64,000 bases of DNA, from assembly GCA_965644295.1 (NCBI GenBank), contig CBFFRP010000363.1, positions 124,001 to 188,000 of the forward strand. The letters run 5' to 3'. This document shows positions 14,201-48,832 of this stretch, one piece after another. This DNA is from Paraphysomonas bandaiensis (lineage: Eukaryota > Protista > Chrysophyceae). A program made the position numbers and the translations under genes. The notes under the pieces were generated by a model that did no database searches, was not told the origin of the DNA, and worked only from the letters and a program-made list of their open reading frames with translations. Positions within the stretch are counted from its first letter, which is position 1, and every line of letters starts with the position of its first letter.

Positions 14201-17200
14201 GTGCCTATTGAGGCCTTGTCATTCCCATTGACACTGAAAGAACGAAACATGAAATCTCTTGAAAACGATGAAGAAAACACCGAGTTCAAGTTGAGTGTCG
14301 CCAACTTTTATCATCTCGATTACGAACTCCACATAAAAGAAGCATTGGCTACGTTTAGTATGCACAAAGTGATAAGCGAATACTTTAGGGAGCAGATTCG
14401 TGTGTATGCGGAGATGTGCTTAGATCGTTGCCACAGAACAACTGTCAAATTGTCCGAGATATTTTCATTCAATATGATGTTTAGCGGGATGGCCAACACT
14501 GCACTTTGCTATGGATATCGAGGGGCATTTACGTCTTTGTTGCGAACCTTAATTGTAGACCAGTTTCCCCATCTGGAGAACTGTGGCAGCTATAGACTAC
14601 CTCATAGCGTGAACATATATCACCGCATTCTTGAAAAGATTGATATAGATGACTGCGATGAGTCACTCCCCAAGTTTTCTATTCCTACTGCTCATGGGGG
14701 TGCTGAGGAGATGTATCGATATGCCACACCCAAGAAGCTCGAGCTAATATTGGTCTACTGCAATGCATACTTGTCTAATATTCATGGGGAGCAATGCTGT
14801 GCCCCCAGTTTCAAGGATAAGAACTACTGCACTCTCACTGTACTTGATATGATTGATAGCCTTCTGTCGTTCGGGTTTTATGACTCGAGAAAGGTTTGGC
14901 GTAGAATCAGTGGCCGACTATGTTTGATGTGCTTGCACAGGAAATTAAAGCTGTGGTTGGTCCTATGATGTTACTATTAGATGGAAGATTGATGACAGAA
15001 ACACCTGATGAAAAGCCAGGTTAAAGAAAGCAAATGTATGTCGATCGTGCTTTATTTTTGTATTAGGTGTGGGTTCGCTGGATTATGCGAGGAAGTCCGT
15101 CAGTATCAGAGCTGAGAAGCGATATACAATTCAAGAGAATGCGGCCGAGATTATCAGTGCCAAGTTTTCTATTTTAAGAATACTTCGCTACATCAAGAAC
15201 ATTCGTGGTCAATATAGACTCGATAAATTTTTGAAGATATTTGCCAAAGTGAATTCTGATAGGCGAAAGACATTTAATTCTGCTATTGGTCCGATTTTAG
15301 CAACATTGGCGGATGACAGTTTGAGCATTTCTACGGTATACCTATATATTTTAGTGTAGCGGCTTGTTTAACTTTATTCCTGCAGTTGGCCAATATGGAC
15401 TACACTGACACGATATTTGTTGACCTCATGATGTATGAAGATGAAGATTTATTCGAAAAAGTTCTTACATGCTTGATTGAAGAACACGAAATCACGAAAT
15501 CCCTAATTCAAAACTGCAAGCACGTTTACATGCTGTACGACGAGAAGTTAGATGAGCCGATGAACAGTTACGACGAACTAGTTGGTGATCTATGGTATTT
15601 GCGACAACTATTCGAGAAACCTAATGTTTGGGCTGGGGGCAATGTGTATGATTTTGACGCACAGAAGTTCAAGGAAGCTACTAATATTCTCGTGCGTCTT
15701 CGAAAATATTTGTACAAAGGCGATGACACTTATGCAGATCAGGACCCTACAACAAGGCTTCCTCATGGGTCAGAAGGATTACAGGAGTTTTTGTTCTCAA
15801 TGAATGTGCACAATATTTTGGTTGAATGCCTGGATTGGATAGCTGATGACAGTCATAGTGACCCCGACTACGTGCCCGTATTCTCATGGACAATGATGGA
15901 AAGCGCTCTTGCGGCGGATGAGGTCTCCCCGGAGCAAATAGTTTGCGGGTCTCTGATGCTACTTTGCGATTTAGTATGTGACAAAAGTCGTCCGTACTTT
16001 TCGAAAATATTCACAATACCATTTATTGAGAGGCTGTCTGAAAAAATGTATTTGCGCAAGTATATCTATGAAATTGTAGTGGAAATATACCGTGGCTCTG
16101 TGGTAAATGTTCTTTCAGTGCCATCAGATGTGATGGAGCTATTTGCATCTCTGCTAGACATTAGAGAGTACCGGAATGTTGCCATGAGATTTTTTGAAGA
16201 GATGTTATGTCCAGACGAGTACGATGAGACCCCTGTACCGAAAAATCAAGCTGCAGTGTGCGAGATACTTCTTGCTAGCAAAGATACATTTGTTATTGAC
16301 CAAAGTCACGTAGCTAAACCAATCAGCGTGAAACTAGGCCTATATATATCCTACATCAACTTATTGAGTGCTTGCTGTAAAGACAACAGCCACAACCGAG
16401 ACATGACTCGATTCTTGTTTCCGTGGTACACTGTTCTTGACCGAATTGAGGACGTTGTACATGCAATATGTAATGCCACATGTCCTACTGAGAATTTGTT
16501 TTTACACGTTGCATTGCTAGATGCTTATGTGGATATATTTTGTGTTATTTCATTGAACCCCTTGTCAAATAACGAAGAAGTAGTCAATAGCAAGCGGTTA
16601 CTGCACTTGATTCAGTACTTATTGGCCCTTATCCACGACGAAATGGTCCCTGGTGGAAAGTTTACACTTTTTGTGGAACCTATTATTCGCTTGGCGAGAG
16701 GTTACCTCGCGGTGACTAAAATTGTCGACAAGTTCGTGGATATTGCAGTGAAGAACATATGCTACCGCATTGTCGAATCCTGTGATGACGCTATTTGGAG
16801 TACGACTAAAGTTTTATGTATGTCTATATGCGATGAAAAGGGATTAGGTGTGAACAAAGATAATTTCAAGACAGGGTGTCTGAACCCTCCAGTGGCGCCA
16901 ACTCGCGTGTCCGCCTGTTCTCACTACAAGTCAGCTCGCAAACGTCTGGTCTGTGTATACGATATGGATCGAATAGCGGAGCACGGGTTTGAATGTGCCA
17001 AGCCTCCTCCAACTCGGAAGGTTTCAATGTTTGTTGACGGCATGGATAAACGTGACATCATGCTTCCTGCTTTACTGGACCAACCTTCTATAGAAATCAA
17101 TAAAGACGAAAAGATCCAGCAATTTCAAGATTTCATTGACCAGAGCGATATTACTGATGTGGCAGTACATGATGCTGGTAGCAGTGAAAATATTGACGAT

Positions 17201-20200
17201 GCAGGAAGACGCGGCATTTCTGGTAATTGTGTACCCACCATAACCCTAGATCACATGCTTTAAACACTAAATAGTTTTAGAACTAATGTGGTAAATGTGA
17301 TAACGTTTATTTAGGAGGGCTGCGCAGGGTCGATGGCCTTCTCACAAGTGCTGTTTCTGGTGGCATTGGGGCTGTAAGCGGTGGGCTTGCTGGAGCAATG
17401 AGTGGTGGTTAGTACCAGAATACCTTATTTTATCTTGTTTATCTCATTGTTGTCATGTTTACAGTGTCTGCCGTTGCGGGGGCTGCAGGGGGGGTACTCT
17501 CTCATGTCGAAATGGAGATGGGAGGTATGTTGGGGGCAAGAACTTCTCGCAGATGTAGCGAGGCGATGAAAGATCAGCAACTACAACGAAATTTAAAAGA
17601 TTTCACGAAGCATATGACAAACAATGAACAGATTAAAGCGGAATTGGTCAAAGAGAAATTGAGCGTGATCGAAATATTGATGAATGCTCACAAGCTGACA
17701 GACCCGAGAGATGTCGAGTATCAGCAAACTTTTGCAGATAGAGTGAACAGAGACGAGGAATCTACCATAACTGATGAACCTCACCGAAGGAAAACCAAGC
17801 GCAAGTCTTTTACAAACGCAATTGTGTCTGGTTTCGATGGCCTGGCGGGTGCATTAAATCTTTCTTCTCAATCTCGAAGAGGTTACTATTTCAGTTATGT
17901 CATCGAAGGATAACCTATGTAATGTTTTGTAGTAATTGAAGTACGACGCAATGTGATACATTGGAACGATATTGTGCGTCGAATGATTCGACATATTGAT
18001 TACAAAAACGATCGTGGTGAAGCTGATAGTGAAAGTAGTGTGTGCAACAATATTATTCACCTCCTGAATCTATTTTTGGAAGAAGGGGAGAATGACGGTG
18101 AAGTGTGATGTTTTGGTAAATGCTTGTCATGATTGTGCTGTAGAGAATGAGGCTTTTTCAACATTAGAGAATCGACAAAATAATCTCAACAGCCTGGATA
18201 TTATGGCGTTGGGATACCGATTAGTTAAATCAACTATTAAGGGGTGCGTTGGATTTCTAACTTCTCAATTATTGCCTCATCGTATGTCTATAGACCCATA
18301 TATGCAAACGCATTGAAGTTGATGACTACAATGTTTTTGGACGGTTGAACTTGTTAATCATATTGGAGATGTTCTAACAATTTGTATTAAGGTAATACCC
18401 ACAGCCAGCAAGCGGTTCTCGACTACATGCACAGTACAGATTCGAATGACAGCGATGGACAATTTTTCAAGAATATTTATGACTCCATTGACCAGGCCTC
18501 TGTTTGGTAGACAGTTTGAGCGTTAGGCATTCTTATACTGATGATACATAATACTATAGGGTGCGCAAGCGACAATTTTTCCAGTCGACCCTGTCTCTTG
18601 AATCCGGGTACTTAGTAACTAAAGTAATTGCGAATGTGTAATCATTTTTTTCTAGTGAACAACGGTTAAGCGCGTCTGACAAGGAGGAAATAAAAGAAAT
18701 ATGTGCTGTGTTGTCATTTTTGCAAGGCTTTTGTGAGGGTCACAACCTTGCTGCCCAAAACTGTCTAAGAGAGCAGGTATTTTTGCACAGGCAATGTATT
18801 TTTGTATGAGACTAATGTACTGCATGTAGCCGTTCAACCGACGCAACTATAATATTATTGCTGCTGCAAATGATCTTCTTGAAGCTTTAGTGCCTCGTCG
18901 CGATATATACGAGTCGATCGGAATTCTGCAGTTCACAGTGCTAGGTTTACTTCTTGACTTCCTCATTGAGTCCATTCAAGGTAGTTGTGTAGTCTTATTA
19001 TTGATTACAGCTTGACTCCTGCTCTTTCAGGACCATGCTCCGCTAACCAGCTGCTGTGTGCACAAAAAAAGACTCTAGAAGTGTGCAAGCAGATTTTGTC
19101 TGCCAAAGATCTACCTTACATCCCGAAGCAACTAAAACTGAGTTGTAAATTCAAGGCTATTACTCTTCTCGCTGCTCTCTTGGAGTGTCGTTACGACGAT
19201 GCAATCGAGAAAATGATGATAGTCAAGGTCGAGCTTTACATTTTAGATGCATTTGGGGTAGAGCTTCGCGAAGAATTTTCCCGCCTCACAACATTACAAG
19301 ACAAGAAGCGTCACATCGATGCTTCCAATTCATTCCCGCTGCTAAAAATGATAGGACACTATCGTGAATTGGATGAAGAGATGGCAGAGCTGGAAAATGC
19401 ATCTAATGCTGACCAGGCCATGTGTCCAGCAATCGAAGATGAGGATGAGAACGAAGACGATGATTTGGCAGATTACAAGTCTGTTGCCACTGCTGTGACT
19501 CACTATAATCCTATGGAACACGTGGATACAGAAATAGCTGATATTAAATTTGCTATTATGAATTTATTTAAGGTAAATAAGTGTTAATGGTGGAATTCGT
19601 GCTTCGATAATGAGAAATAGGTTACTAAAAAGCTGGAGATGGTGGCATCGCAACAATCTGAGTCATTGACCACATTTAAAACTTCTGAAAAATTTAAAGA
19701 CGATATTGAGGAGAGCAAAAAGACTTTTGAATCTATGATGTGCGAGGTAGATATCTTTTGGAATGGAAAGGTAAGCAGCGTGACCTGAAGTCCTGTGTGT
19801 CAGCTCTGTGGCACAGGTCGAACGTGTCATATTTCCGCTACCTCGAGAAGCAACTGATCTGTCGGAAACAACCAAGATTGAGTTCATGAATAACTGTGAC
19901 TTGACTAATCGAGAAGGTCGTTTGAAGGAGCTCATGGATATGGCTCCAGAATTTTATGATGAGATGCGAGTGTATAACTATCTCTCTCGTGGTCCGTTAT
20001 ATGGGTGGCTACTTGACAATTACTTTTACTTCAAAATGTTTACCTTGGTATTGGTGTCTCTCTTGGTTTTGAGTATTTTATTTGGACACACGAGTCAGTC
20101 TCCCAGACTAAGTGAATATCGAAATAAGGGTTCTGAAGACTTCACAATTATATTTGTGCTGTCGTCGTGCATATGCTATTTCATTTTGTTTCTGTACTGG

Positions 20201-21562
20201 TTTGTGCCACGCATCGCTATGAGTGCCTATAGACTGCGCGTGGAAGGACCCATGGAGTATGATAAAAACAGCAACCCCAAGGATCGCATGCGCAGAATTC
20301 TTGCAAATTATGATTGGGGAACACTCGTGCTGCCCTTTGTCACATTTCCGTTTTTGTTGGTAGTCTACGCTACTCACTATACTGGCTATTTAGGTAACGG
20401 AGAAATGGATTCGTCTTATCTGATTGAGAAATATGTCGTAATTACCTGCGCTATATATGGATTTTGGCTGCCGTTTGCTGTTCGCAAGGCTATATTAGTT
20501 CCAAACAATTTCATCGAGGAAATGTTTTGTATTGTTCTGGATACTCTTGTCGACTGGTCTATAATTGAACACCTCGGTTGCTTACTCCTGTTGATACTGG
20601 GTTACAAGTATGTGTATTTTTACTGTTTGGTTCTTCTTGATTGGATATCACTCTCCGAGCACATGAAAAACGTTGTACGCAGTGTAATTCGTCCGCTGAA
20701 GTCGCTGTGTAGCGTATTTGCCCTTTTCATATTTGTGATTTTGATATTCTCGATGATTGGCTTCTTTGTTTTTGACGAGTCATACAAGATAACGGAGGAA
20801 GAATTGGAAGCGACAGGAACTGGAGGTGTTGAAAATGATCCTGCTCAGTATTGTTCTTCGCCAATGTCTTGTGTTTGGACTGTCGCCTATGGGGCAGTGA
20901 GGGCGGGAGATGTTGCAGAAATTATGGACGATATTTCTCCCGATCAAGGGTCTCATTATTATGCTCGACTTCTTTTCGACATGGCTTTCTTTGTTATTCT
21001 CGGTGTTCTTCTATTTGACATGGTTACTGGAATTATCGTGGATACTTTTGTTTCACTGAGAGAAGAAACGTGTGAGAAAGAGAACGTAATCCACAATGAA
21101 GTATTTATATCAGGTACGACTCAAAGTTGTTTTGACTTTGTAACTTCACAGCTGCAAGTTTGCTATATGTTCACATGTTATCATCTTACTATAGGCATCA
21201 CCAGAGATATGTGTGCTGATAAAGGTGTCAGTTTCAAAGATCACCAAGATATTCATCAACACACTTGGAACTACATTTACTTTTATGGTCAGTAAAATCT
21301 ATCTCAAATATTGTATCTGAGGTACATTTTTTGTGCAGCCTACCTTCGCGAGGCAGATAAAACGCTTCTAGATGGCGCTGAGCAATATGCTTGGGACCGA
21401 ATGCAAAATGGAGATGCATCATGGTTCCCCCGACTGACTAGTTCTGTGTTCCAAGGACTTGCAGATGAAAAGGAGGAAGAAGATAAGCTCTCAGAACTAT
21501 CGCAGCGCCTCTCTAGCATCGAGTCTACAATGGCCGAAATAGTTGCCAAATTGAACAAGTAA
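11232..21562 (+). CDS. ITPR: Inositol-1,4,5-trisphosphate receptor / ryanodine receptor family Ca2+ release channel (many short introns)
   Basis: N-terminal beta-trefoil/MIR signature LYGNVVQLQHVLSGMFLS; RIH-type segments (NQEQC, MCLDR); RIH-associated LCEGHNLAAQNCLREQ and ESIQGPC..NQ; six-TM region ending RLLFDMAFFVILGVLLFDMVTGIIVDTFVSLREE; C-terminal HTWNYIYF..YL...GAEQY...SWFP and coiled coil. Confidence 0.92.
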
Positions 21563-25558: not shown

Positions 25559-28500
25559 ATAATAATAGATGTGATAAATATAATGCGTGATTTGTAGAAC
25601 GTGTCATACTTCGTCGACGACTCTATCAGTATATCAATAAACTTGACGTGCAGACTGCATAAATCTGATTAAGCAGAAATATCGACTTTAGTAGCGTCTG
25701 TACCCATTCTGCACCTCAAAAGTAGCTAACGGTAACGCTATTGGGGGACTGTGTCGATATCCCAGAAACCACATTCCTCCTCAAAAGTGGTTGTGGTACC
25801 TGAGTGATATCACTGTATGCTATACAACCCTTCTTTCCCACGTCTAGCTCGTCAAAACGATCTAATATCAATGCAATTAACTGAGGCTGTAAAGCTCCTA
25901 TACGAACCAGCATAAGAATGACGAACTCGGTTGAGTCTATATCGCCATCCCCATTTTCCATATTCAAAAGTTTCATTGTATTTATCTCCTCTGCAGTGAT
26001 TCGGGCGGCAAGACGATCATACACAGCCTGTGACCTTGTAAATGAAACAACATAATGCGCTGACATCCCACACGCCAGTGCCATCAACGGCGCCCCGACA
26101 AGTAAATAGATCCCTGCATACAGGTAGTATCGGTCTGGAGAGTCTTGAGGAATTGTCCAGAAGCCACCAGTGGTCATCGCAGACCAGGAAAAGTACAATG
26201 CTTGAATAAACGACCACTTTATGGTGGCACAGCTCACGATCACTCCAACAGCAGTCCACAGCAGAAAAGCTATATGGGTTCTACATTTGGGCAGATAGTA
26301 CGCAATTCCGGCATAGATATCGTCGAATATGCCCTCTGTTGCCGCTGCCTCAATCACCTTTTGTCGCAACATTGCATCCACATACCTATTATGTACATAC
26401 ATACGGGAGGCTATTGTTAGTCAAGTAGAGATGAATTGAGTTGAATACTGATAATATGAATAATATACGCAAAACTAAATCAATGCACAATGAATGCAAC
26501 ACATACGGGCCATATAAAAGCATTTAATGTACAATATGCATACAAAACCCTACTCACCATTCATTCTTCGAATTAGCCAAACTATTGGCCATTAACGCCA
26601 TAATACTAGCTAAACCGACCGTGCCGAACATGTAGTGGAAAATAGTATACACTTTAGTCGTAGTGTCCTGGGATAACTCTGTCCAGAATACGCAGTAGCC
26701 AACACTTATGGAAGTGTACAATCCCTTGGCCAATGATAAGTCCTGGTGAACCGAGTAGAATATAGTACCACTCACTATCCAAAGAATCCTGTACAAATAC
26801 CTCACATTAACGACACCATGTATATGATGTAGCTACAGTTGTAGTGATACGCACAATATGCAATCCATACAATAGAAAACAATCACACAATGGTGACAGA
26901 AGCACAAAGATTATAACACACATGGCAACATTGTGACAGGCAACCGCATTGGCTACTTGTACGAGTATTGTATCCTACTCACCACACCAGTGCAGAACGC
27001 ATGAACGAGCTTCGAAAAACATATAACACTCCTTGAATAATCGTATTTCGATTATACTGCATCGAATCCATAGAACTTGCGACAGCTTTGGTACTATATT
27101 TCAATTGTTTTGCTTCTTTCAGAGAGCCTGGCATGGGCGCCGACACTGCCTCTTTCATACTTGGCCGAGGCTCGTCATTTTCGGCAAAACACTTCTTAGC
27201 AGTCACTGGGTGATATTTTCCGCTGTCACACTCTTCGACCGCGGTACTATGGTTATACATATGTGTATCACATTGGCTGGAGGTATCTTCTTCGCCGCTC
27301 TCAGCTTCCAAAAGATGGAGACAAGCGCTGTCTGTTGTTTGGCTACTATTTGCTATATTCTCAACTTCATCACACACATTATCGCGGTCATCAATATCTT
27401 CATCAGCAACTGGCAGTGGTTCCACTGGGTTTAATCTTGACGTAGGTGATACACCATGGATAGAAATATTACCGCCTGATAAGTAATCGCTTGACATACT
27501 TTTCTCTGTTTCTTCTTCAGAATTGTGTACTTTGGATCGAGTAAATGTGCTCATTTTCCGGCTTAAACTGCTGAAAATATATTGAGACGAAAGTCGTCGT
27601 TTCCGCCTCTCGTGAATAATATCATCACATTTTATTTGCCCGTGGCTTCGTCTGTCCAACATTCGAAATCGTTCGTTGATTTCTCGAATCAATTCCGGAG
27701 ATGCAGCACCAATGCGCACCACTGTAAGCACAATGAACTCTCTTTTATCTATAGTACCGTCTCCATCTTCCAGCCCAAAAGTTGTCATGAACTCAATTTC
27801 CTCAGTTGTAATCGGCGCAGAGAGCTTATCCAACAAAGACAAGTCTTCAGGAGCTAATATTATCATACTTAATATCAACCCTAAAACAAAGTTAGTGGGT
27901 CCCATACATATCACATAGGTGCTCATTGTATACTAGTAATCACATTGTGTGGTATATAGCAGAGTGCTCAGCAAACAAATATCATACCTAAGGATAGTGC
28001 CATCAACGGAACACCCGTGGCTGCGTAGAATGCGGTTATTACATACTTCCAACTAGGCAATCCATTAGGAATGGCTTTGTATCCTCCACTTGATAGAGTC
28101 GACAATGTAAAATCTAAGGCATCACCAATATCCCATTCCGGAACTATCAATAAGCTCCAAATAACTCCAAATACAAGAGAACATATGAACCATAAAAGAA
28201 TTTTTAATTTCGGATAATAGAGTGCATAATACGCCTCGATATCATCATAGATGCCATCACTTTGAATAGCCACCTCCAGCTTCTGCCTCTTCAGTACTTG
28301 CATGGACCAGGAATCTTTGTTGTCCGTTAGCTCTCGAGCAATAAATATAACCATGACGCCAAAAAATATGACTCCGATAGACGAGTGGAATATGGAAAAT
28401 AACATACTACTGGGGGAATTATACTGTGCTGGCGATATTGGTACAGCCCAGCCCATTGACCACCCTATATTTACACTGCAACACATGCATCAGAACAGGC

Positions 28501-29037
28501 ACATACAAATACACCTAATATAAGCATACGCAAAGCACGGTGTTCGTGATATGATATCATTTACTTTATACGCGAAACAATACTATACGTCGACCAACTA
28601 ACCTCATATACAGTCCCAACGCCCATCCGAAATCATCGTGAACAGCATAGAACACCATCCCAACAAACATCCACATTAGCCTACAATAACGCCATTCATA
28701 AATGTAGTCAAGTAGTAGGATAGACGCAGCACCAACCATGCCACCACAGGAACATAACTGCGCAACACATCAAACTGAGAGTGTTGTGAGCTTAATGCCT
28801 CGTTCTCCATGTCGATTATATCTGCTGGAGATATGCTCACAAGCGACACCAGTTTACGGCGTGCTTTCTGTGTATGATCGTCCGGTTGCGTTGGAGGCAT
28901 TCGGCTCACAAGCCTTCAGATAGAAACACACTCCTGTCAAATCAAACCAAATAAGAGGCCGTCTATAGGCGCATACAGTGAACTCAGATCCACAGAGAGT
29001 TCCTGTGATCCCATGTGCGTCTTTCAACTCGTGTATG
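25559..29037 (-). repeat. Left arm of a ~3.5 kb inverted duplication
   Basis: Reverse complement of 33693-37168. It is nearly identical across the 5' UTR, exons and introns, and clearly more diverged in the last ~180 bp (3' flank). Confidence 0.95.
25716..28900 (-). CDS. Tandem TPK/K2P-like channel, 8 TM / 4 pore domains / 2 EF-hand pairs (copy 1)
   Basis: Six exons splice in phase into about 840 aa: two TPK-like units (TM-P-TM-TM-P-TM plus EF-hands DGDGTIDKREF..LDRRSHGQI and NGDGDIDSTEF..LDVGKKGCI) joined by an acidic, low-complexity linker. Confidence 0.82.
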
Positions 29038-29486
29038 GGTCAGTGGAGAGGGTTAGGTATGTATGTATATATTGTGGTGATCTAGATGTGTGCGGTGGCA
29101 TATACACACTGCTGTATATGGAGGGTTCCAGTCCACCAACAGCCGTCTTTTCATGTTACTTTATGAAAACCCACTTTTTTACAAAAATCTGAGATTTTAT
29201 ATTTTTAGCAACCATTTTTTGATAAAAATTTCAAATTTTTAAGCAAATTGTCGTTCTAAACTCTCGCTCATTTTTATCTCGTTTCAGTGACATTGAAATC
29301 CAATGCATCAAGACAACACTTGAGCTGACCCGACACTTGAGACTTATCATTCTATGGCAATCATGGACCACTGGACACGAATATGCAACCAGAGTTTCAT
29401 TTCATTCACTTCTTCTTTAGATATCGCAAGGTTTCTTATATCACATCCGGCACCATTGCTCGAAATCCCTACATTGAAGTTTCATC

Positions 29487-31935
29487 ATGAAGCCCCTGAA
29501 AGGTTTGTATACAGATGGGCTCTCACATATATGAGTGATGTGCAATTCCTTCGATTTGTTTTTGAATAATGCCTGATTTATGTTCTCTCAGTGACTCGTC
29601 TATGCGATTACAAGGAACTTCGCAAAAAGAACCGACAAGACGCCATAGACAAGCTCCAGGCAGCTAAATTTGCAAAAGCACAGTCGAAAGACAGTTATGG
29701 ATCTGATGTTGACCTCAATGCTATTCTCGATGAATATGAAAAGGATTATCCTAGTAATATTAGTGAATTTTGTCGCAATCACAATATTAGTCGAGGAGTG
29801 TTCTTCAGGTAAAACTTATTGTCATAACATACGTATTTCTGATGGAATATCTGCTTTGTAGGGCCAAAGATAAGCGAGAAAGAGGGCAAGATCCCAATCG
29901 TAGCAATTTTGGACGCACGACCTGGACGGACGAAGACGGTGTGGCAATGTTGTCCGACATGAGCCATGAGGCCACTGCAACTAGGAACTCATTCACTTCT
30001 GCATCCGATCGGGATTTCTGCAAAGCACTGACCAGTGTAGGGACCGTCAACAAGCAAGGGGGAAACTTCCTTAAGAATCTCAAGGCACCCTCTAAGACCA
30101 CCATATGCAAGTATTTGAATATGGTGTCCCCTGAAAGTGAGCCAGTTCCGTCCACAATCAATGCGCGAAGGCAGGAGGCCATCAATGATGTATTCAATCC
30201 CTTATCCAGCATAGCCATAGTAGGTGCCATCTTAGGGGTGTCGCCAGAAAATCCTCAAGGCAACCGATTTCATCCATGGAACAAGACCAATTCAGATACT
30301 CACAACATCACTCTAGGATATAGTAAGAAGAAGAGGGCACGTTGTCCAAAGGTATGTATACTTGGCGATTCATGGCTCCTTTATTTACACAATTTTGTCA
30401 TAGGATATGAAAAAAATGATGAGACGTAGGCACCTTTCTGCCGCGATTACCAACAAGAAGAAGAAAATCCGATCCGTTAAGTGCACGGCTACTATGAGTG
30501 CAGAGCCTGCTCTACTCAGCCATATTGTTGTCATCCGGGAACGAAAATGCAAGGAGTTGAAGTGTTTCAAGTTCAACATGAATGGATGGGTACAGAGCAT
30601 TATTTTTCGTCCTGCACACAGGAACAAACAGTACACTGAGAGCAAAACTATGGATGCCGCTGATACAGTCTGGGAGGACGTGGATATGGAGGAGAGTGAT
30701 GAAGCTATGCGGGGTTTGAAGGAAGCTGAGGGTAGTGATGAGAAGGAAGAAATTGTTCAAGATGATAAAGGTTCAACATGTAAAAGTGACGATGATGAAG
30801 GACTAATCCCAAGCGGAAATGAGGATAATTATTGCTCCGGTCCTAACTTGTACAAACGGGATCAAATGCGAGCCCTTCGGGAGCAGCAAGACGACCGTGA
30901 TTGTGATAAGTTGGAGGAGGCACATGCTACACAAGAGAAACCACTCAGTGCAGAGGCAACTTTTGGAATGTTTATCATTGATGAACACATTCTCCCTGTA
31001 CTTGTTAAAAACAGAGATCGAAAAGAGAGGACATTGAAGAAACTCGACGTGAATTACTCGAGTACAGAGAAGCAGGTCCCTATTCTTTGGTCACTTGATG
31101 GCGAATATGGATTCATAAGTGCTCTTATCGACGTACTAATGGGAAAATGGGGTGATTTCTCCATCGAGTTTGTCAAGTTAGCAGCCGCATACACCATGTG
31201 TGCACAGCGATGTTTTGCTTTGTGCAATGAGTATTGTAAAAAGGCGGAATTTTACGACCCCAAGACGAAGGGCACAACTCCCATCTTCCTTCCATACGTC
31301 GTCCAGTATATGAAGGACACCAAGATGGATAGTGACTCAATAGCAACGTATACAAACTTCTTTCATCGCCTGCCTACAATGATCACCAAGTGTTATACTG
31401 GTGACAACATTGTATCTGGATTCGCCTCGGCCGCTTTCGAGCCGTTCGATCCTGAAGTCCTGCTTTGGAACCCCCCCCATATTTGTCAACTTTCTACAGA
31501 ACAAGCGCCCCGCCTTCTTAATCATGTTATACCAGAACTTATACAGCTTGCCAGCCTTCGCGGTCTAACACGTGATGATGAAATCTCCGCAATCCTTACT
31601 AAGCATAACGTTAAGTTAGCTACACCTATGTTGAATTTGAATGAGCTTAATATTATCCGCCAGAGAGCTGTATGGCTCAATCACAGCGTTGAGGCAGAAA
31701 GACGCAATGATATGCTACGTGCTTCTACCCACGCCAAAGCTGAGAATGCTGCTGAGAAGGAACGCAAGAAGGCCGAGGCTGAACACAAAATGGTGGAAGC
31801 TGTCAAGGCGAGAGAGCGCAGAAACGCAGAGGCTGTCGTGTAGAGGGAACGAGAAAAGGCAGAAAATGCTGCTGAAAGGGAGAGGAAGAAAGCAGAGGCC
31901 ACCGAGAAGAGAGAACTAAAGAAAAGACAAACATA
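29487..31935 (+). pseudogene. Inactivated pogo/CENP-B (DDE_1)-like transposase with introns
   Basis: HTH-like NISEFCRNHNISRGVFFR, KTNSD, LWSLDGEYG, KLAAAYTMCAQ (resembles LPAHTTHLLQP but the following D...F segment is missing), IVSGFASAAFEPFDP (resembles I..GF...GI.P.NP), and a K/E/R-rich tail interrupted by an in-frame TAG at 31841-31843. TIRs were not found. Confidence 0.55.
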
Positions 31936-33692
31936 AGATAGCTGCGCCACACTTGCCCCTCGCAGACGTAAGATCTTGTTGGGCCCTGTTCCGTGAAGTG
32001 TGTCGCAGGTAAAAAGTATAGTTAGCTGAATTAAGTTGTTTTAATACCGCTGATTTATGATTATTTTCTTCTTGTAGTATAAACACAAATAGCTATACGT
32101 CACTAACTATATTAGCTATAGTTATTGCATACTACTATAATAAAACTAATTTTGTGCTGCTGCATGATATGTATCGCATAGCTGGTAGAACAATCAAGCA
32201 ATTTTATGTAACCACTGCCTGCTATCACCTATCATCTACAACCTAGCTAGCTACATCTACAAATTCAAGAGAGTGGAGCATGAAGAAATAAAACTTACGA
32301 ATTAATTGGTTTACCACTTCAGTTATTAATAAGAATTCAGCAACAAATATGTAGGTAGTACTATCTAGTTCTTGTTTGTGTGTTGTCTAATTTGGTCTTG
32401 AGGTAGAGTGGCATGATCCATGAGCGTGAGGTTATCATGTATTGCTTAAGAAGTTGGATCTCTTGAATGTTGACACTCTTTACGCTCCTTGGTGCCTCTC
32501 TGTAATCCCCGTCGGGCCCAGAAGTGGACAAGATCACAGTAACAGCTACCTCAAACGCCTGGCCAGCTCGAACGAACACACGCGCTTCATACTCTTAATT
32601 CTAGACCCGAATAGCTGCAATGTAAGGTTCGTAACTATGCAATGCAGTATAATGAATTGAAGCAGAGTTCATACACTAAGGACATAACTTACAATTCAAT
32701 TCATGTATTTCATTTTCATGTTAATGACGCGTTTATTAAAGTACTGATGTAGAGATTGTGTTCAACATTCCGAAATACACCTCTTGATTCTGTAGAGTAT
32801 ATACCGAAGGGAGTCGTTTGTCACTGCAGTGATTCGTATCACACTTCATCATGTGAGTCATATACTGATACTCATGTTATCTTTGTATGGCCTATTACCG
32901 ACTTCACACTCTTCAGGTGGAATGATTCCAATGGCTTGAGGTATCACACAAAAGTCACGTAGCTTTGTCAGCACCCATGTTATTCCATACAATCCGTAGT
33001 TTTGGTCAGTTTATGACCAATAAGAACCGTGTAGGACTTGAAGTACGGATCGTATGACTCACACTTACAATTACTTACACTCGCAGTTCTGACTTCATAC
33101 AACACCTGCCCTTTTCATGCGCTTTTTCCACTTCCAGTCATTCATACTATCGTCTAATGACCCTGAATATAATTCAACTTGCTTCTTGAAGCATGAGGAG
33201 GTTTAGTGGATCCTGAAACAAGACGTGCCTCAAACATTGAAACTACTCAATAAATTCGATTATTTCGAGCAGGAGTGACTGTGTAATTCACCGCTCTTTA
33301 TAAACACATAAATGACACTGAGTGGGCTACTTCTCTAATACGCAGAGTTCAAGTGATAGATGCTTCTGTCTACTCCACATGACATCGACCGCTACCATAC
33401 CACGATATCGTACATCCAGATATGCATCTAGATATGGATACCATCCCGCATCGCTGCTGATATACAAGGACGGTATACGGTCAACGGTAAACGGTATACG
33501 GCATATGGATGTACACACCAGGATACGTGTACACTCTCCCCCAACTACACGTCAACCGTATACCGGTATACACTGAACTACAGTACGAAAGTAAAGTTTG
33601 TAACAGAATCCTCATACTGGAATAACACACCATACATACACACACACACACATTCACACACTCACAGCCTATTCGAATATCCATAACAGACA

Positions 33693-36600
33693 CATACACG
33701 AGTTGAAAGACGCACATGGGATCACAGGAACTCTCTGTGGATCTGAGTTCACTGTATGCGCCTATAGACGGTCTCTTATTTGGTTTGATTTGACAGGAGT
33801 GTGTTTCTATCTGAAGGCTTGTGAGCCGAATGCCTCCAACGCAACCGGACGATCATACACAGAAAGCACGCCGTAAACTGGTGTCGCTTGTGAGCATATC
33901 TCCAGCAGATATAATCGACATGGAGAACGAGGCATTAAGCTCACAACACTCTCAGTTTGATGTGTTGCGCAGTTATGTTCCTGTGGTGGCATGGTTGGTG
34001 CTGCGTCTATCTTGACTACATTTATGAATGGCGTTATTGTAGGCTAATGTGGATGTTTGTTGGGATGGTGTTCTATGCTGTTCACGATGATTTCGGGTGG
34101 GCGTTGGGACTGTATATGAGGTTAGTTGGTCGACGTATAGTATTGTTTCGCGTACAAAGTAAATGATATCATATCACGAACACCGTGCTGTGCGTATGCT
34201 TATATTAGGTGTATTTGTATGTGCCTGTTCTGATGCATGTGTTGCAGTGTAAATATAGGGTGGTCAATGGGCTGGGCTGTACCAATATCGCCAGCACAGT
34301 ATAATTCCCCCAGTAGTATGTTATTTTCCATATTCCACTCGTCTATCGGAGTCATATTTTTTGGCGTCATGGTTATATTTATTGCTCGAGAGCTAACAGA
34401 CAACAAAGATTCCTGGTCCATGCAAGTACTGAAGAGGCAGAAGCTGGAGGTGGCTATTCAAAGTGATGGCATCTATGATGATATCGAGGCGTATTATGCA
34501 CTCTATTATCCGAAATTAAAAATTCTTTTATGGTTCATATGTTCTCTTGTATTTGGAGTTATTTGGAGCTTATTGATAGTTCCGGAATGGGATATTGGTG
34601 ATGCCTTAGATTTTACATTGTCGACTCTATCAAGTGGAGGATACAAAGCCATTCCTAATGGATTGCCTAGTTGGAAGTATGTAATAACCGCATTCTACGC
34701 AGCCACGGGTGTTCCGTTGATGGCACTATCCTTAGGTATGATATTTGTTTACTGAGCACTCTGCTATATACCACACAATGTGATTACTAGTATACAATGA
34801 GCACCTATGTGATATGTATGGGACCCACTAACTTTGTTTTAGGGTTGATATTAAGTATGCTAATATTAGCTCCTGAAGACTTGTCTTTGTTGGATAAGCT
34901 CTCTGCGCCGATTACTACTGAGGAAATTGAGTTCATGACAACTTTTGGGCTGGAAGATGGAGACGGTACTATAGATAAAAGAGAGTTCACTGTGCTTACA
35001 GTGGTGCGCATTGGTGCTGCATCTCCGGAATTGATTCGAGAAATCAACGAACGATTTCGAATGTTGGACAGACGAAACCACGGGCAAATAAAATGTGATG
35101 ATATTATTCACGAGAGGCGGAAACGACGACTTTCTTCTCAATATATTTTCAGCAGTTTAAGCCGGAAAATGAGCACATTTACTCGATCCAAAGTACACAA
35201 TTCTGAAGAAGAAACAGAGAAAAGTATGTCAAGCGATTACTTATCGGGCGGTAGTATTTCTATCCATGGTGTATCACCTACGTCAAGATTAAACCCAGTG
35301 GAACCACTGCCAGTTGCTGATGAAGATATTGATGACCGCGATAATGTGTGTGATGAAGTTGAAAATATAGCAAATAGTAGCCAAACAACAGACAGCGCTT
35401 GTCTCCATCTTTTGGAAGCTGAGAGCGGCGAAGAAGATACCTCCAGCCAATGTGATACACATATGTATAACCATAGTACCGCGGTCGAAGAGTGTGACAG
35501 CGGAAAATATCACCCAGTTACTGCTAAGAAGTGTTTTGCCGAAAATGACGAGCCTCGGCCAAGTATGAAAGAGGCAGTGTTGGCGCCCATGCCGGGCTCT
35601 CTGAAAGAAGCAAAGCAATTGAAATATAGTACCAAAGCTGTCGCAAGTTCTATGGATTCGATGCAGTATAATCGAAATGCGATTATTCAAGGAGTGTTAT
35701 ATGTTTTTCGAAGCTCGTTCATGCGCTCTGCACTGGTGTGGTGAGTATGATACAATACTCGTACAAGTAGCCAATGCGGTTGCCTGTCACAATGTTGCCA
35801 TGTGTGTTATAATCTTTGTGCTTCTGTCACCATTGTGTGATTGTTTTCTGTTGCATGGATTGCATATTGTGCGTATCACTACAACTGTAGCTACATCATA
35901 TACATTGTGTCGTTAATGTGAGGTATTTGTACAGGATTCTCTGGATAGTGAGTGGTACTATATTCTACTCGGTTCACCAGAACTTATCATTGGCCAAGGG
36001 ATTGTACACTTCCATAAGTGTTGGCTACTGCGTATTCTGGACAGAGTTATCCCAGGACACTACGACTAAAGTGTATACTATTTTCCACTACATGTTCGGC
36101 ACGGTCGGTTTAGCTAGTATTATGGCGTTAATGGCCAATAGTTTGGCTAATTCGAAGAATGAATGGTGAGTAGGGTTTTGTATGCATATTGTACATTAAA
36201 TGCTTTTATATGGCCCGTATGTGTGGCATTCATTGTGCATTGATTTAGTTTTGCGTATATTATTCATATTATCAGTATTCAACTAAATTCATCTCTACTT
36301 GACTAACAATAGCCTCCCGTATGTATGTACATAATAGGTATGTGGATGCAATGTTGCGACAAAAGGTGATTGAGGCAGCGGCAACAGAGGGCATATTCGA
36401 CGATATCTATGCCGGAATTGCGTACTATCTGCCCAAATGTAGAGCCCATATAGCTTTTCTGCTGTGGACTGCTGTTGGAGTGATCGTGAGCTGTGCCACC
36501 ATAAAGTGGTCGTTTATTCAAGCATTGTACTTTTCCTGGTCTGCGATGACCACTGGTGGCTTCTGGACAATTCCTCAAGACTCTCCAGACCGATACTACC

Positions 36601-37168
36601 TGTATGCAGGGATCTATTTACTTGTCGGGGCGCCGTTGATGGCACTGGCGTGTGGGATGTCAGCGCATTATGTTGTTTCATTTACAAGGTCACAGGCTGT
36701 GTATGATCGTCTTGCCGCCCGAATCACTGCAGAGGAGATAAATACAATGAAACTTTTGAATATGGAAAATGGGGATGGCGATATAGACCCAACCGAGTTC
36801 GTCATTCTTATGCTGGTTCGTATAGGAGCTTTACAGCCTCAGTTAATTGCATTGATATTAGATCGTTTTGACGAGCTAGACGTGGGAAAGAAGGGTTGTA
36901 TAGCATACAGTGATATCACTCAGGTACCACAACCACTTTTGAGGAGGAATGTGGTTTCTGGGATATCGACACAGTCTCCCAATAGCGTTAGCGTCAGTTT
37001 CTTCTGAGGTACGAAATGGGTACAGACGCTACTAAAGTCGATAGTTCTGTTGGATCAGATTTATGCAGTCTTCATATCATTATCATATTTATTTGTTTGT
37101 GATAGCGTCGTCGACGAAGTATGACACGTTCTACATAACACACATTATATTCGTCACATCTATTATTA
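33693..37168 (+). repeat. Right arm of the ~3.5 kb inverted duplication
   Basis: Reverse complement of 25559-29037. Inner identity stops at catacac (33693). Confidence 0.95.
33830..37007 (+). CDS. Tandem TPK/K2P-like channel, 8 TM / 4 pore domains / 2 EF-hand pairs (copy 2)
   Basis: Same exon structure as copy 1 (exons about 33830-33992, 34042-34120, 34247-34735, 34843-35740, 35935-36165, 36338-37007). About 11 amino-acid differences from copy 1 are visible. Confidence 0.82.
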
Positions 37169-46069: not shown

Positions 46070-48832
46070 ATGCCTAATGCAGTAGTTCCAGTGAGCAACG
46101 AATCCGTAAGTATACGATGATTAGTAGGGAGCTGTTTGAATGATATATTTGTGTCATATCTCACAGATGCAGGCATTACAAGTCGAACACCCCAATCAGT
46201 ATGAGCGGCCGAAGCGCCACCGCAAATCTCTTAAGAAGAGAGTGTTTGAAGTCATGGATTCTGTGCCGATGCAGTTATTTCTTGGGTTGCTTTTGATATT
46301 GTCACTGTTCCTTCCCGATATATGGATATTATGTAATGCGTCGTCAGAATCAGACGAAGCTCTGTACTCCATATTACTTGTCGTATTCATAATTTTCATA
46401 TTCGAAACTGTAATCCTGACTGCTGTTCAAGATGATTACTTCTTGAGCTTCTTCTTCTGGATGGATTTTATCGGGACGCTATCAATTATTCTTGACATTG
46501 GATGGATAGCAGACTCCTTCATGCCTGACAACACTGATGCTACTCAGAAAGGGTCACTTCTCAGGGCCGCAAGGGCAGCAAAGCTTGGGGCTCGTTACGG
46601 TCGTTTGATGAGGCTATTGAAGCTGATGCGTTTTTTCAAGTTTCTTCCATGCTTTAAGCAAGAAGAAGATGTAGAACCAGAACCTACTATGTCTGCTGTG
46701 CGAAAAGTTTCCTCTGAATTGTCATCAGTCCTCTCCCGTCGTGTGGCAGCCCTTGTGATGCTTATCGTCATAGTAGTTCCTTTCCTAGACTATAATATTG
46801 TTGACAAAAGTGTGGATGCTTGGCTGACTAACTTTAGGAGAGTGGCCTATTCCAACACGACAACCACTGATGACTTAGACAGTATGGCGAGGAAGTTTCG
46901 TCGTTTTTACCATACCGAAGCTCTCACTCCATTGCAGCTTACTGTAGAAACTGCACACTTGCCTCTATTCAACGAGCATTATTCTCAGGGGTACAAGCTT
47001 CGAAATGACAATAAGATTCTGTACGAAATGAGTTTCCTCGACAACGACGAAAAGTACTGGGTACGCGTTAAGATGAATAACACCGTCATCCGCCAGTGGG
47101 ATGCCTTTTTTGGGATAATGCTTATTATTCTAGTTATTGTAGTGCTTGTTGGGTTCTCTGCCTCGTTTCAGAATTCCGTGGATGTGCTAGTAGTGGTACC
47201 GCTGGAGAAAATGATGAATACCTTGCGACGTAGCGCAACTGCTATGTTAAAAAGCATGCAGGCTATGGACAAGGAGGATGAAGAAAACATGATGGGTGAA
47301 AATAGTGATTTGGACCAGGAGCTAGAGACTGCTGTACTCGAAAAGATGGTAGAGAAATGTAAGACAATTTGATGTCATTTTATGATTTCTAATGTTTGTG
47401 CAGTGGCCAGAATTGTGAAACACGTCACCAATGACAATGACCTGGTGGTGGATGAGAATGTAGATAGTGCCGTGGCTAGCTGGCTTACTCAGAACTACGC
47501 TGGTAATGCAACGAAAAAGCGTGACGTGATTGTAAAGGACCATCCGGACTTGTCAGACGAAGAACAACAGAACAAACTCAGGGATCTTCATAAAAGTGTA
47601 GACCCCAAAGTTGTCAATAGCTGGAACTTTGATGTACTGAAGTACGACTACGAACAACTTTTTGAATATAACCGATACTTGTTCGATGTTTTCAACGTGT
47701 TCGCTCAGTTTGACATTCCGGTTGCTGTGATGGACGCTTTCATGCACGAGTTGTCGGTCCGGTACATTAAGGACAACACGTACCACAACTTTCATCATGC
47801 ATGTGATGTGACACAAACCACCTACCGCCTGATCATGGTTTCCAAGGTGCATATCGCGCTTAGCGATTTGGAAGCATTTTCTATGCTTGTAGCAGCAATG
47901 GGCCATGATGTGGGGCACCCTGGTGTCAATAACGCCTTCTTGGTGAAGACCCGCCACGACCTGGCTATGATACATAATGACAAGTCCCCGCTCGAGAATA
48001 TGCACTGCTCCTTGTTGTATGAGCTCTTCCGTAAGCCGGAATTTAACATAATGGCGGGGCTACCAGATTGTCAATGGCGGGAGTCTAGAAAGATCATCTT
48101 ATCGCTAATCCTCGGGACGGATATGGCGCATCATTTTGATCAAGTGTCAAAAACCCAGGTAAATTTTGAGTGAATTCTTAATCTTATGTTTGTTTAATTG
48201 TCTGGTCATGCAGCTGTTTCTTGAAGTCAACGGTGAGGATGTGAAAAAGTTCTGCTACGGGCATACTGATACAATTGAGTGTTTCGGCGAAGAAAAGAAT
48301 AGAATTTTTATTATGGAGCTGTTTTTACACTGCGCTGACATTTCAAACCCGTACAAGCCATTTGACATATGCGCACAGTGGGCAGACTTGGTATCACAGG
48401 AGTTTTTTTCTCAGGGAGATAAGGAAAGAGCCGGTGGGATGGATGTTTCGCCAATGATGGACAGGGATACATCTAACCTGTTTAATATGCAAATGGGTTT
48501 TATTGAGTTTGTAGTGTCGCCCCTGATTAACAGTAAGTGCCACTTCTCTTGCTGCTTGCTGACGGTCCTGATAATTATTCGTAGCTGTGGTGACACTTTT
48601 CCCACCGTTGAAGGAGACAGGAGAGATGATGCTCTCGAACTACATTCTGTGGGGTGAGAAGCGCAAGGACGAAATTCGCGGAACTGCCGACATGGCTGCT
48701 GAAAAGAAGGACGAAGAAATCAAGAAGGTGGACGACCGTATCAGTAAATTTAAGGACAAAATGGCTTTTCTTAGCAACATTGTTGAGGCAAGAAGAAAGC
48801 ACTCCTCCGGAAGTCTGGCCTCTAACAAGTAG
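46070..48832 (+). CDS. Class I 3',5'-cyclic nucleotide phosphodiesterase fused to an N-terminal voltage-sensor-like 6TM module
   Basis: S1-S4 with FIIFIFE (S2), FFWMDFI (S3) and RAARAAKLGARYGRLMRLLKLMR (S4); two further TMs; a HAMP-like helical linker; PDE motifs YHNFHHACDV, HDVGHPGVNNAFL, NDKSPLENMH, ILGTDMAHH, HCADISNP, EFFSQGD and QMGFIEFVV. All four introns keep the frame. Confidence 0.92.

Follow-up and report, generated by a model that had tools for sequence, protein, structure and literature searches.

Each arm of a spaced palindrome in the DNA of Paraphysomonas bandaiensis carries a gene whose product very probably contains four pore modules within a single polypeptide. The genes lie in a 64,000-nucleotide stretch of contig CBFFRP010000363.1 (positions 124,001 to 188,000; hereafter the window), and all coordinates below are positions in that window. 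Pores of the K2P and TPK families are normally built from a dimer of two two-pore (2P) subunits. Here, two units with the layout M-P-M-M-P-M (M, membrane helix; P, P-loop), each followed by a cytoplasmic EF-hand pair, are encoded in tandem as one 842-residue chain with four different filters. We consider it reasonably likely that this chain is a pseudo-tetrameric cation channel derived from the TPK type, with altered selectivity and coupling to Ca2+.

Splicing joins both halves in assembled transcripts

Four public sequencing runs were compared over positions 33700-37100, namely X1, X2, X5 (a polyA marine metatranscriptome) and X16 (presumably genomic). A single 2790-nt contig of X1 spans 33716-37100 and contains all six exons, with five segments skipped. 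X2 and X5 show the same splice junctions, and the X16 contig is colinear with the genomic DNA. The resulting gene model for the plus-strand copy is as follows, with membrane helices numbered M1 to M8 and P-loops P1 to P4.

33830-33993, plus strand: exon 1, defined from spliced contigs; start codon, cytoplasmic N-terminus and start of M1
33994-34042, plus strand: intron 1, 49 nt, GT..AG, holding a 7-nt CCTACTA indel
34043-34120, plus strand: exon 2; M1 and most of pore helix 1
34121-34247, plus strand: intron 2, 127 nt, GT..AG
34248-34735, plus strand: exon 3; end of pore helix 1, P1 filter, M2, M2-M3 linker, M3, P2 filter and most of M4
34736-34842, plus strand: intron 3, 107 nt, GT..AG
34843-35740, plus strand: exon 4; end of M4, EF-hand pair 1, disordered linker and start of M5
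35741-35934, plus strand: intron 4, 194 nt, GTGAGT..ACAG, linking both halves in frame
35935-36165, plus strand: exon 5; M5, pore helix 3, P3 filter and M6
36166-36337, plus strand: intron 5, 172 nt, GT..AG
36338-37007, plus strand: exon 6; M6-M7 linker, M7, P4 filter, M8, EF-hand pair 2 and stop codon
28900-28737, 28680-28603, 28475-27988, 27880-26983, 26788-26558 and 26385-25716, minus strand: exons of the minus copy

Exon 4 is an uninterrupted genomic open reading frame (ORF) that covers the end of M4, EF pair 1, the linker and the first part of M5, and intron 4 is bridged by contigs of X1, X2 and X5 with 177-231 nt on each side. To the extent that assembled contigs can tell, both halves therefore share one reading frame and one mRNA. 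An earlier note, made from the sequence alone, had joined the halves across this intron; its coordinates are exact, and the junction is bridged in three runs. The spliced ORF is 842 amino acids (aa) long and free of stops in the plus and minus copies alike, the latter having been mapped through the repeat. It is 100% identical over its full length to P0151, a transcript ORF labelled MMETSP1103 and TAXON_ID 36769, which is Paraphysomonas, a chrysophyte (Stramenopiles).

The raw list of ORFs conceals intron 1, and the first transmembrane (TM) helix is encoded only once those 49 nt have been removed. Reading of the raw ORFs had suggested a frameshift between the copies at 34010, which we rejected, as the CCTACTA indel sits in intron 1 and is harmless. 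A 44-nt intron 2 and other splice sites guessed from the sequence were superseded by the contig junctions. One X2 contig holds a rare additional GT..AG junction (36814-36861; depth 9.9 versus 475) that drops 46 nt; it would shift the frame within EF pair 2 and is probably splicing noise or a minor isoform.

The predicted protein resembles a four-domain channel

The protein has eight TM helices, corresponding to eight hydrophobic segments, together with four pore modules, two EF-hand pairs and a disordered linker of ~140 aa. Its two halves (residues 52-331 and 540-813) form an internal repeat that is 35% identical over 273 residues (z = 40 against shuffles). One AlphaFold2 run, made with an 87-sequence alignment (A1), gave a model with a mean predicted local distance difference test score (pLDDT) of 79.4 and a predicted template modelling score (pTM) of 0.74. 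The membrane parts exceed pLDDT 90, and the 158 disordered residues are limited to residues 353-490 and the termini. Since the pTM reaches 0.74 despite this disorder, the two halves appear to be packed confidently. The elements below are taken from this model.

Residues 50-69: M1
Residues 74-85: pore helix 1
Residues 102-131: M2
Residues 156-191: M3
Residues 197-208: pore helix 2
Residues 222-250: M4
Residues about 269-331: EF pair 1
Residues 353-490 (35169-35582, plus strand): disordered linker, pLDDT 31-45
Residues 535-557: M5
Residues 562-573: pore helix 3
Residues 585-616: M6
Residues 639-675: M7
Residues 679-690: pore helix 4
Residues 704-746: M8
Residues about 751-814: EF pair 2

The model was compared exhaustively with 48,161 PDB representatives. 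Four-domain channels top the list, with 330-356 aligned residues, and CaV channels match at Z 13.2-11.2.

7xm9_A, NaV1.7: Z 17.7, root-mean-square deviation (rmsd) 4.4 Å, 356 aligned residues (model 46-739, chain 243-1769)
7sx3_A, NALCN: Z 16.0, 356 aligned residues
6kzp_A, a calcium channel: Z 13.2
7mix_A, CaV2.2: Z 12.7
3jbr_A, CaV1.1: Z 11.7

About 4 x 89 residues are aligned in sequence order through the four repeats, and the model therefore sets P1-P4 around one axis in the manner of domains I to IV (DI-DIV). K2P chains cover half of the model (TWIK-2, residues 559-734, the third and fourth pore domains, PD3-PD4; Z 12.6, rmsd 3.6), and in a separate Foldseek search all of the top 50 matches were K2P channels. 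The loop between M1 and P1 has only ~4 residues, so there is no K2P-type cap.

Searched alone against the PDB, the sequence gave marginal matches to NaK and to calmodulin/troponin C (E ~1e-3 to 1e-2), and a profile of 35 units (A2) matched calmodulin at E 2e-9 and NaK at E 4e-8. At the level of these profiles, homology is shown between the pore modules and the P-loop cation-channel superfamily, and between the tails and EF-hand pairs. Pfam Ion_trans_2 scored 20.6-21.8 bits on the ORF pieces of the arms and 21.9 bits on P0151 and P0001, against a cut-off of 22.5 that the relatives P0006 (27.7) and P0012 (26.1) exceed; EF-hand matches on the arm pieces were weak.

Four non-canonical filters are conserved by position

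The four filters, aligned to T-V-G-Y-G, are listed below.

34264-34278, plus strand: P1 filter, SMGWA (residues S87-A91)
34633-34647, plus strand: P2 filter, SGGYK (residues S210-K214)
36029-36043, plus strand: P3 filter, CVFWT (residues C575-T579)
36552-36566, plus strand: P4 filter, TGGFW (residues T692-W696)

All four pore helices are equal in length and share a Leu-Tyr anchor that sets these strings at the T-V-G-Y-G positions, and the register matches the ends of the predicted pore helices. That the filters are all different and none canonical had been claimed in the earlier note, in these same strings and this register. The columns produced by hidden Markov model and MAFFT alignment were one residue off for the odd modules and were corrected by hand to the structural register. 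An upstream VGY(G/S/C) in the odd P-loops, which reads S-V-G-Y-G in some paralogues, was rejected as the true filter, because it forms the tail of the predicted pore helix and the four modules, when lined up on their Leu-Tyr anchor, fall into the register given here.

The signature T-x-G-Y/F/L-G is absent from all four loops, the second glycine of G-Y-G being missing in each. The central glycine is retained in three of them (P1, P2 and P4), and three of four have an aromatic residue at the Tyr position. In P3, Phe stands in place of the first filter glycine, and an aromatic residue is found there throughout the clade of fused proteins described below. Across this clade the loops read x-[IML]-[G/N]-W-x (P1), x-[GAC]-G-Y-x (P2), x-[IVML]-[F/Y]-[W/L]-x (P3) and T-G-G-[LMIF]-x (P4). 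Judged from these alignments, the filters are conserved position by position and are not the product of drift.

The EF-hand pairs follow two inner helices

In the model, helix-loop-helix pairs follow M4 and M8, at positions where weak Pfam EF-hand matches occur, and begin ~20 residues past these inner helices, as in plant TPK1. The first loop of each pair is given here.

34950-34985, plus strand: first loop of EF pair 1, exon 4, LEDGDGTIDKRE
36762-36797, plus strand: first loop of EF pair 2, exon 6, MENGDGDIDPTE

Family-wide, the first loop of each pair follows (L/M/I)-(E/D)-(D/N)-G-D-G-x-(I/L/V)-D-x-x-E and aligns with calmodulin loop 2. Ligand positions 3, 5, 9 and 12 are canonical, and position 1 is hydrophobic. 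The second loops, DRRNHGQIKCDD and DVGKKGCIAYSD, are degenerate.

The fused channels form a clade within a larger two-pore family

An exhaustive HMMER search with exon 6 as query recovered 1176 representatives at E <= 1e-3, 280 of them at E <= 1e-10. The top match, P0001, is the plus copy starting at Met31. A word-index protein search found no match to exon 6 and, with the full protein, returned only the protein itself and one paralogue. Four pore modules are present in 11 of the top 150 representatives, several others being N-terminally truncated. With cluster members included, the fused clade holds at least 11 complete proteins, among them five from the same Paraphysomonas transcriptome (P0151, P0157, P0162, P0189 and P0192) and one from P. 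imperforata. The spacing between the second and third pore domains (PD2-PD3) ranges from ~240 to 600 residues across family members. These fused proteins are already in public sets, as unnamed or 'hypothetical' entries.

In a maximum-likelihood tree of the units, SH-aLRT support was 99% for the fused clade, 100% for the unit-1 clade and 94% for the unit-2 clade. Because unit 1 and unit 2 form separate clades, one old duplication and fusion was followed by expansion of the gene family; the tree shows that the fused family arose once from a two-pore EF-hand channel gene and expanded in Paraphysomonas. P0023 (931 aa, a Logan contig) differs in that its two units are sisters with 100% support, both halves having S-I-G-W-G / x-G-G-(L/M)-W filters, and by its place in the tree it is a separate, recent fusion. 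P0026 is another independent fusion of two-pore units. Fusion from 2P to 4P has therefore occurred more than once.

The two-pore relatives P0029-P0149 (350-550 aa, with EF hands) belong to a large, mostly unnamed family in marine eukaryotes. Their P1 reads N-V-G-Y-S-I-G-W-G-D/Y and their P2 S-S-L-S-T-G-G-L-W-x-I-P-x-D-S-P. Since these filters are themselves non-canonical, the ancestral unit was already so, and P1 and P3 of the fused proteins diverged further. A family-specific motif, (E/D)G(Y/I)xDDI...YYxPK, is conserved in the M2-M3 linker. By features and shape, the nearest large Atlas clusters are Ion_trans_2 plus EF-hand proteins of diatoms, haptophytes, streptophytes (TPK) and giant viruses, and no four-pore proteins were found among these clusters. 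No description of a natural 4P protein of the K2P/TPK type was found in the literature, a provisional result since most subscription journals lay outside the search.

The two copies and their surroundings in the window

A repeat search of the 64-kb window found the spaced palindrome at 25644-37079, with arms that are 99% complementary, ~3.4 kb in size and occupied by one six-exon gene each.

25644-28712 and 34011-37079: inverted-repeat arm pair, 3069 nt, 99%
28719-29044 and 33686-34011: inverted-repeat arm pair
25644-29044, minus strand: left arm, carrying the minus gene copy (repeat search)
33686-37079, plus strand: right arm, carrying the plus gene copy (repeat search)
29045-33685: spacer between the arms, 4.6 kb, outside the channel gene
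29842-30429 and 30407-31843: spacer ORFs in overlapping frames, 195 aa and 478 aa, the latter with a Lys/Glu-rich C-terminus

A Pfam search of the two spacer ORFs gave no family match. The coding sequences of the two channel copies differ by 26 nt and 11 aa, none of which falls in any filter, and their introns differ by 1.4%. The proportions of synonymous (pS) and nonsynonymous (pN) differences are 0.027 and 0.0056; pN/pS is thus low (0.21), and both copies are therefore under purifying selection. Spliced contigs of X2 carry variants of the minus-copy type, and those of X1 and X5 carry variants of the plus copy, a pattern suggesting expression of both copies or of both allelic forms. Of the 26 coding differences, six lie within the last 31 nt of the coding sequence, near the outer end of the arms, and public contigs, including the X16 DNA contig, are mosaic for variants of the two copies. 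Such mosaicism and clustering are compatible with ongoing gene conversion between the arms.

The window is eukaryotic, with short and interrupted ORFs, and abundant in signalling and channel genes, the channel pair included. Pieces of an IP3-receptor/ryanodine-receptor-like gene lie at 13331-21295, where 13331-14968 encodes a RIH domain (E 1e-10) and 19808-21295 an Ion_trans pore (E 1.4e-16). An ORF at 46140-47372 has a partial, S1-S4-like Ion_trans match (22.5 bits), and further along are a PH-domain ORF (52910-55006) and an ORF with ankyrin repeats and RasGEF (55538-58156; RasGEF E 4e-27).

Discussion

The earlier note had proposed a covalently linked, asymmetric pseudo-tetramer comparable to Nav/Cav, and the predicted model supports this in that NaV, NALCN and CaV channels are its top structural matches over the four pore modules. 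The protein is not unique, the two genes belonging to a multigene family with at least 11 fused proteins. The suggestion, also made there, that one half might be decaying fits poorly with halves that are conserved as separate clades across the family and with a pN/pS of 0.21 between the copies.

We propose that the two tandem TPK/K2P-type units, joined by the cytoplasmic disordered linker, would fold as a single chain with four pore modules around a central axis in the order P1-P2-P3-P4. In the model, fusion would stand in for the dimerisation of K2P and TPK subunits, and the four P-loops would be permanently non-equivalent. Given the lost glycines, these loops would probably be unable to form a canonical four-site K+ filter. 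Altered rather than strict K+ selectivity is expected because the second G-Y-G glycine is absent in four loops and the first glycine of P3 is replaced by an aromatic residue; judging from these residues, selectivity may be weak or altered, with non-selective passage of monovalent cations and possibly permeation by Na+ or Ca2+. Two cytoplasmic EF modules would hang from two of the four inner helices. Ca2+ regulation through EF hands is established for the plant TPK family (TPK1). By analogy, Ca2+ regulation is plausible here, and the most likely role of the EF pairs is to link the inner gate to cytosolic Ca2+ or to a constitutive structural interaction.

The protein resembles plant and algal TPK channels such as AtTPK1, which share the M-P-M-M-P-M layout followed by a C-terminal EF-hand pair and are likewise capless. 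TPK channels dimerise, whereas this protein fuses two units and would need no dimerisation. It also differs from them in lacking TxGYG in any loop and Asp at position 1 of the EF loop, in scoring below the Pfam cut-off for Ion_trans_2 and in having a family-specific motif in the M2-M3 linker. Animal K2P channels (TREK, TASK, TWIK, THIK), which gave the best Foldseek matches, also form the pore from four non-identical P-loops, yet their 2P chains dimerise, bear a helical cap and have G-Y/F/L-G filters, unlike this predicted monomer with four different loops and EF hands. NaV, CaV and NALCN share with it the single-chain pseudo-tetramer and four non-equivalent filter loops. Our protein, however, has eight TM helices, two per pore module, and has neither S1-S4 voltage sensors nor a ring of the DEKA or EEEE type; only the S5-S6 pore modules take part in the match, and the pore modules here come from the 2TM K2P/TPK lineage. 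The resemblance is one of architectural convergence and not of membership.

Trk/Ktr/HKT/KdpA (SKT) proteins provide a precedent for an 8TM/4P architecture in one chain with reduced filters. Their structural matches span only half of the model (KtrB, Z 10.7; OsHKT2;1, Z 10.7; KdpA, Z 7.9), and sequence and profile searches gave neither a Pfam TrkH match nor a PDB sequence match to SKT proteins. SKT proteins lack EF hands and have a separate prokaryotic origin, their kinship in sequence being limited to the P-loop fold. Because the unit tree places our protein inside the eukaryotic EF-hand two-pore family, its origin appears to be independent of theirs. Yeast TOK1 (8TM/2P) and TPC (2 x 6TM) are likewise internally duplicated pore chains, but TOK1 has only two P-loops and TPC two 6TM repeats, and both dimerise, unlike this predicted monomer.

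Several points weigh against the channel as we propose it. The pseudo-tetramer comes from one AlphaFold run, in which the alignment holds only ~15 sequences over the first half. The contigs are assemblies, and translation from an internal start to give a shorter isoform, or cleavage in the linker, is compatible with them. Selectivity and Ca2+ gating are both reasoned from residues only. Leu, Met or Ile replaces Asp at position 1 of the better EF loop family-wide and the second loops are degenerate, so that Ca2+ binding may be weak or absent. Trk, Ktr and HKT proteins, moreover, reach K+ or Na+ selectivity with a single glycine per P-loop, and by this analogy the notion that our channel is not K+-selective could be wrong.

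The same single-chain pseudo-tetramer could then be a K+-selective leak channel or a Ca2+-activated K+ channel, in which the glycine carbonyls of P1, P2 and P4 and the conserved aromatics suffice, as in reduced Trk/Ktr/HKT filters. In its favour, three of the four loops retain the central glycine and three have an aromatic residue where Tyr would stand, S-I-G-W-G-D in P1 of the two-pore relatives is close to T-I-G-Y-G-D, and the closest named relatives are K+ channels. We regard it as unlikely, however, as none of the four loops retains G-Y/F-G and P3 has Phe at the first-glycine position, where an aromatic residue is found clade-wide. It is established from mutagenesis that Shaker and K2P filters lose K+ selectivity when either glycine is missing. 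A different possibility is that the chain is cleaved in the linker, or started internally, and that the working channel is a heterodimer of two 2P subunits, like heteromeric K2P channels. This would suit a disordered linker with pLDDT 31-45, the widely varying PD2-PD3 linker length and the half-length fragments present in the database. Yet the same genes account for these fragments, as partial contigs or ORFs, and spliced contigs are continuous across the linker and the junction. In addition, the fusion is retained in all members of an old clade and re-arose in P0023, which argues that the covalent link is selected; we find the heterodimer improbable.

Filters far from every characterised conducting filter, and Pfam scores under the gathering cut-off, might instead indicate a non-conducting, degenerate protein of channel descent with a regulatory or Ca2+-sensing function, comparable to Arabidopsis KCO3, in which unit 2 and its P3 loop are inactivated. 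This we hold to be highly improbable, given that the filter residues and the pore and inner helices of both halves are preserved among paralogues and between species, that pN/pS between the copies is 0.21, and that the TM core is predicted as a regular pore with pLDDT >90. An artefact, whether by false joining of adjacent genes or by a collapsed or misassembled palindrome, is largely refuted and hardly credible. It is true that contigs cannot prove a single molecule and that the X16 DNA contig is a mosaic of the two copies. Nevertheless, a single genomic ORF, exon 4, connects M4, EF pair 1, the linker and the start of M5, three independent runs or studies show intron 4 spliced out with the frame kept, the independent MMETSP ORF P0151 is identical, and the same architecture is found in paralogues. 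The TPK-derived pseudo-tetramer with altered selectivity is thus the reading that we prefer.

The pseudo-tetramer principle is already known from NaV and CaV, and the 8TM/4P single chain from Trk, Ktr and HKT; the tree points to an independent origin in the eukaryotic EF-hand two-pore family. A conserved and expressed natural 4P fusion would be a second independent example, after NaV/CaV, of the evolution of a pseudo-tetramer with asymmetric filters. As a natural concatemer, the fused channel allows its four P-loops to be mutated one at a time and so makes testable what a selectivity filter achieves once all four loops have diverged. It also draws attention to a large, so far unannotated family of marine-protist channels that have EF hands and two or four pore domains and whose S-I-G-W-G and T-G-G-L-W filters lie outside current models of K+ selectivity. 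More tentatively, and as a possibility only, this protein may be the founding example of a eukaryotic '4P' channel family in which the 2TM K-channel lineage independently completed the path from one to two to four pore domains taken by the 6TM lineage (NaV/CaV). The aromatic residue peculiar to P3 would then set a non-K+ selectivity, permeant to Na+ or Ca2+ and modulated by Ca2+, that might serve the excitability or motility of heterotrophic flagellates.

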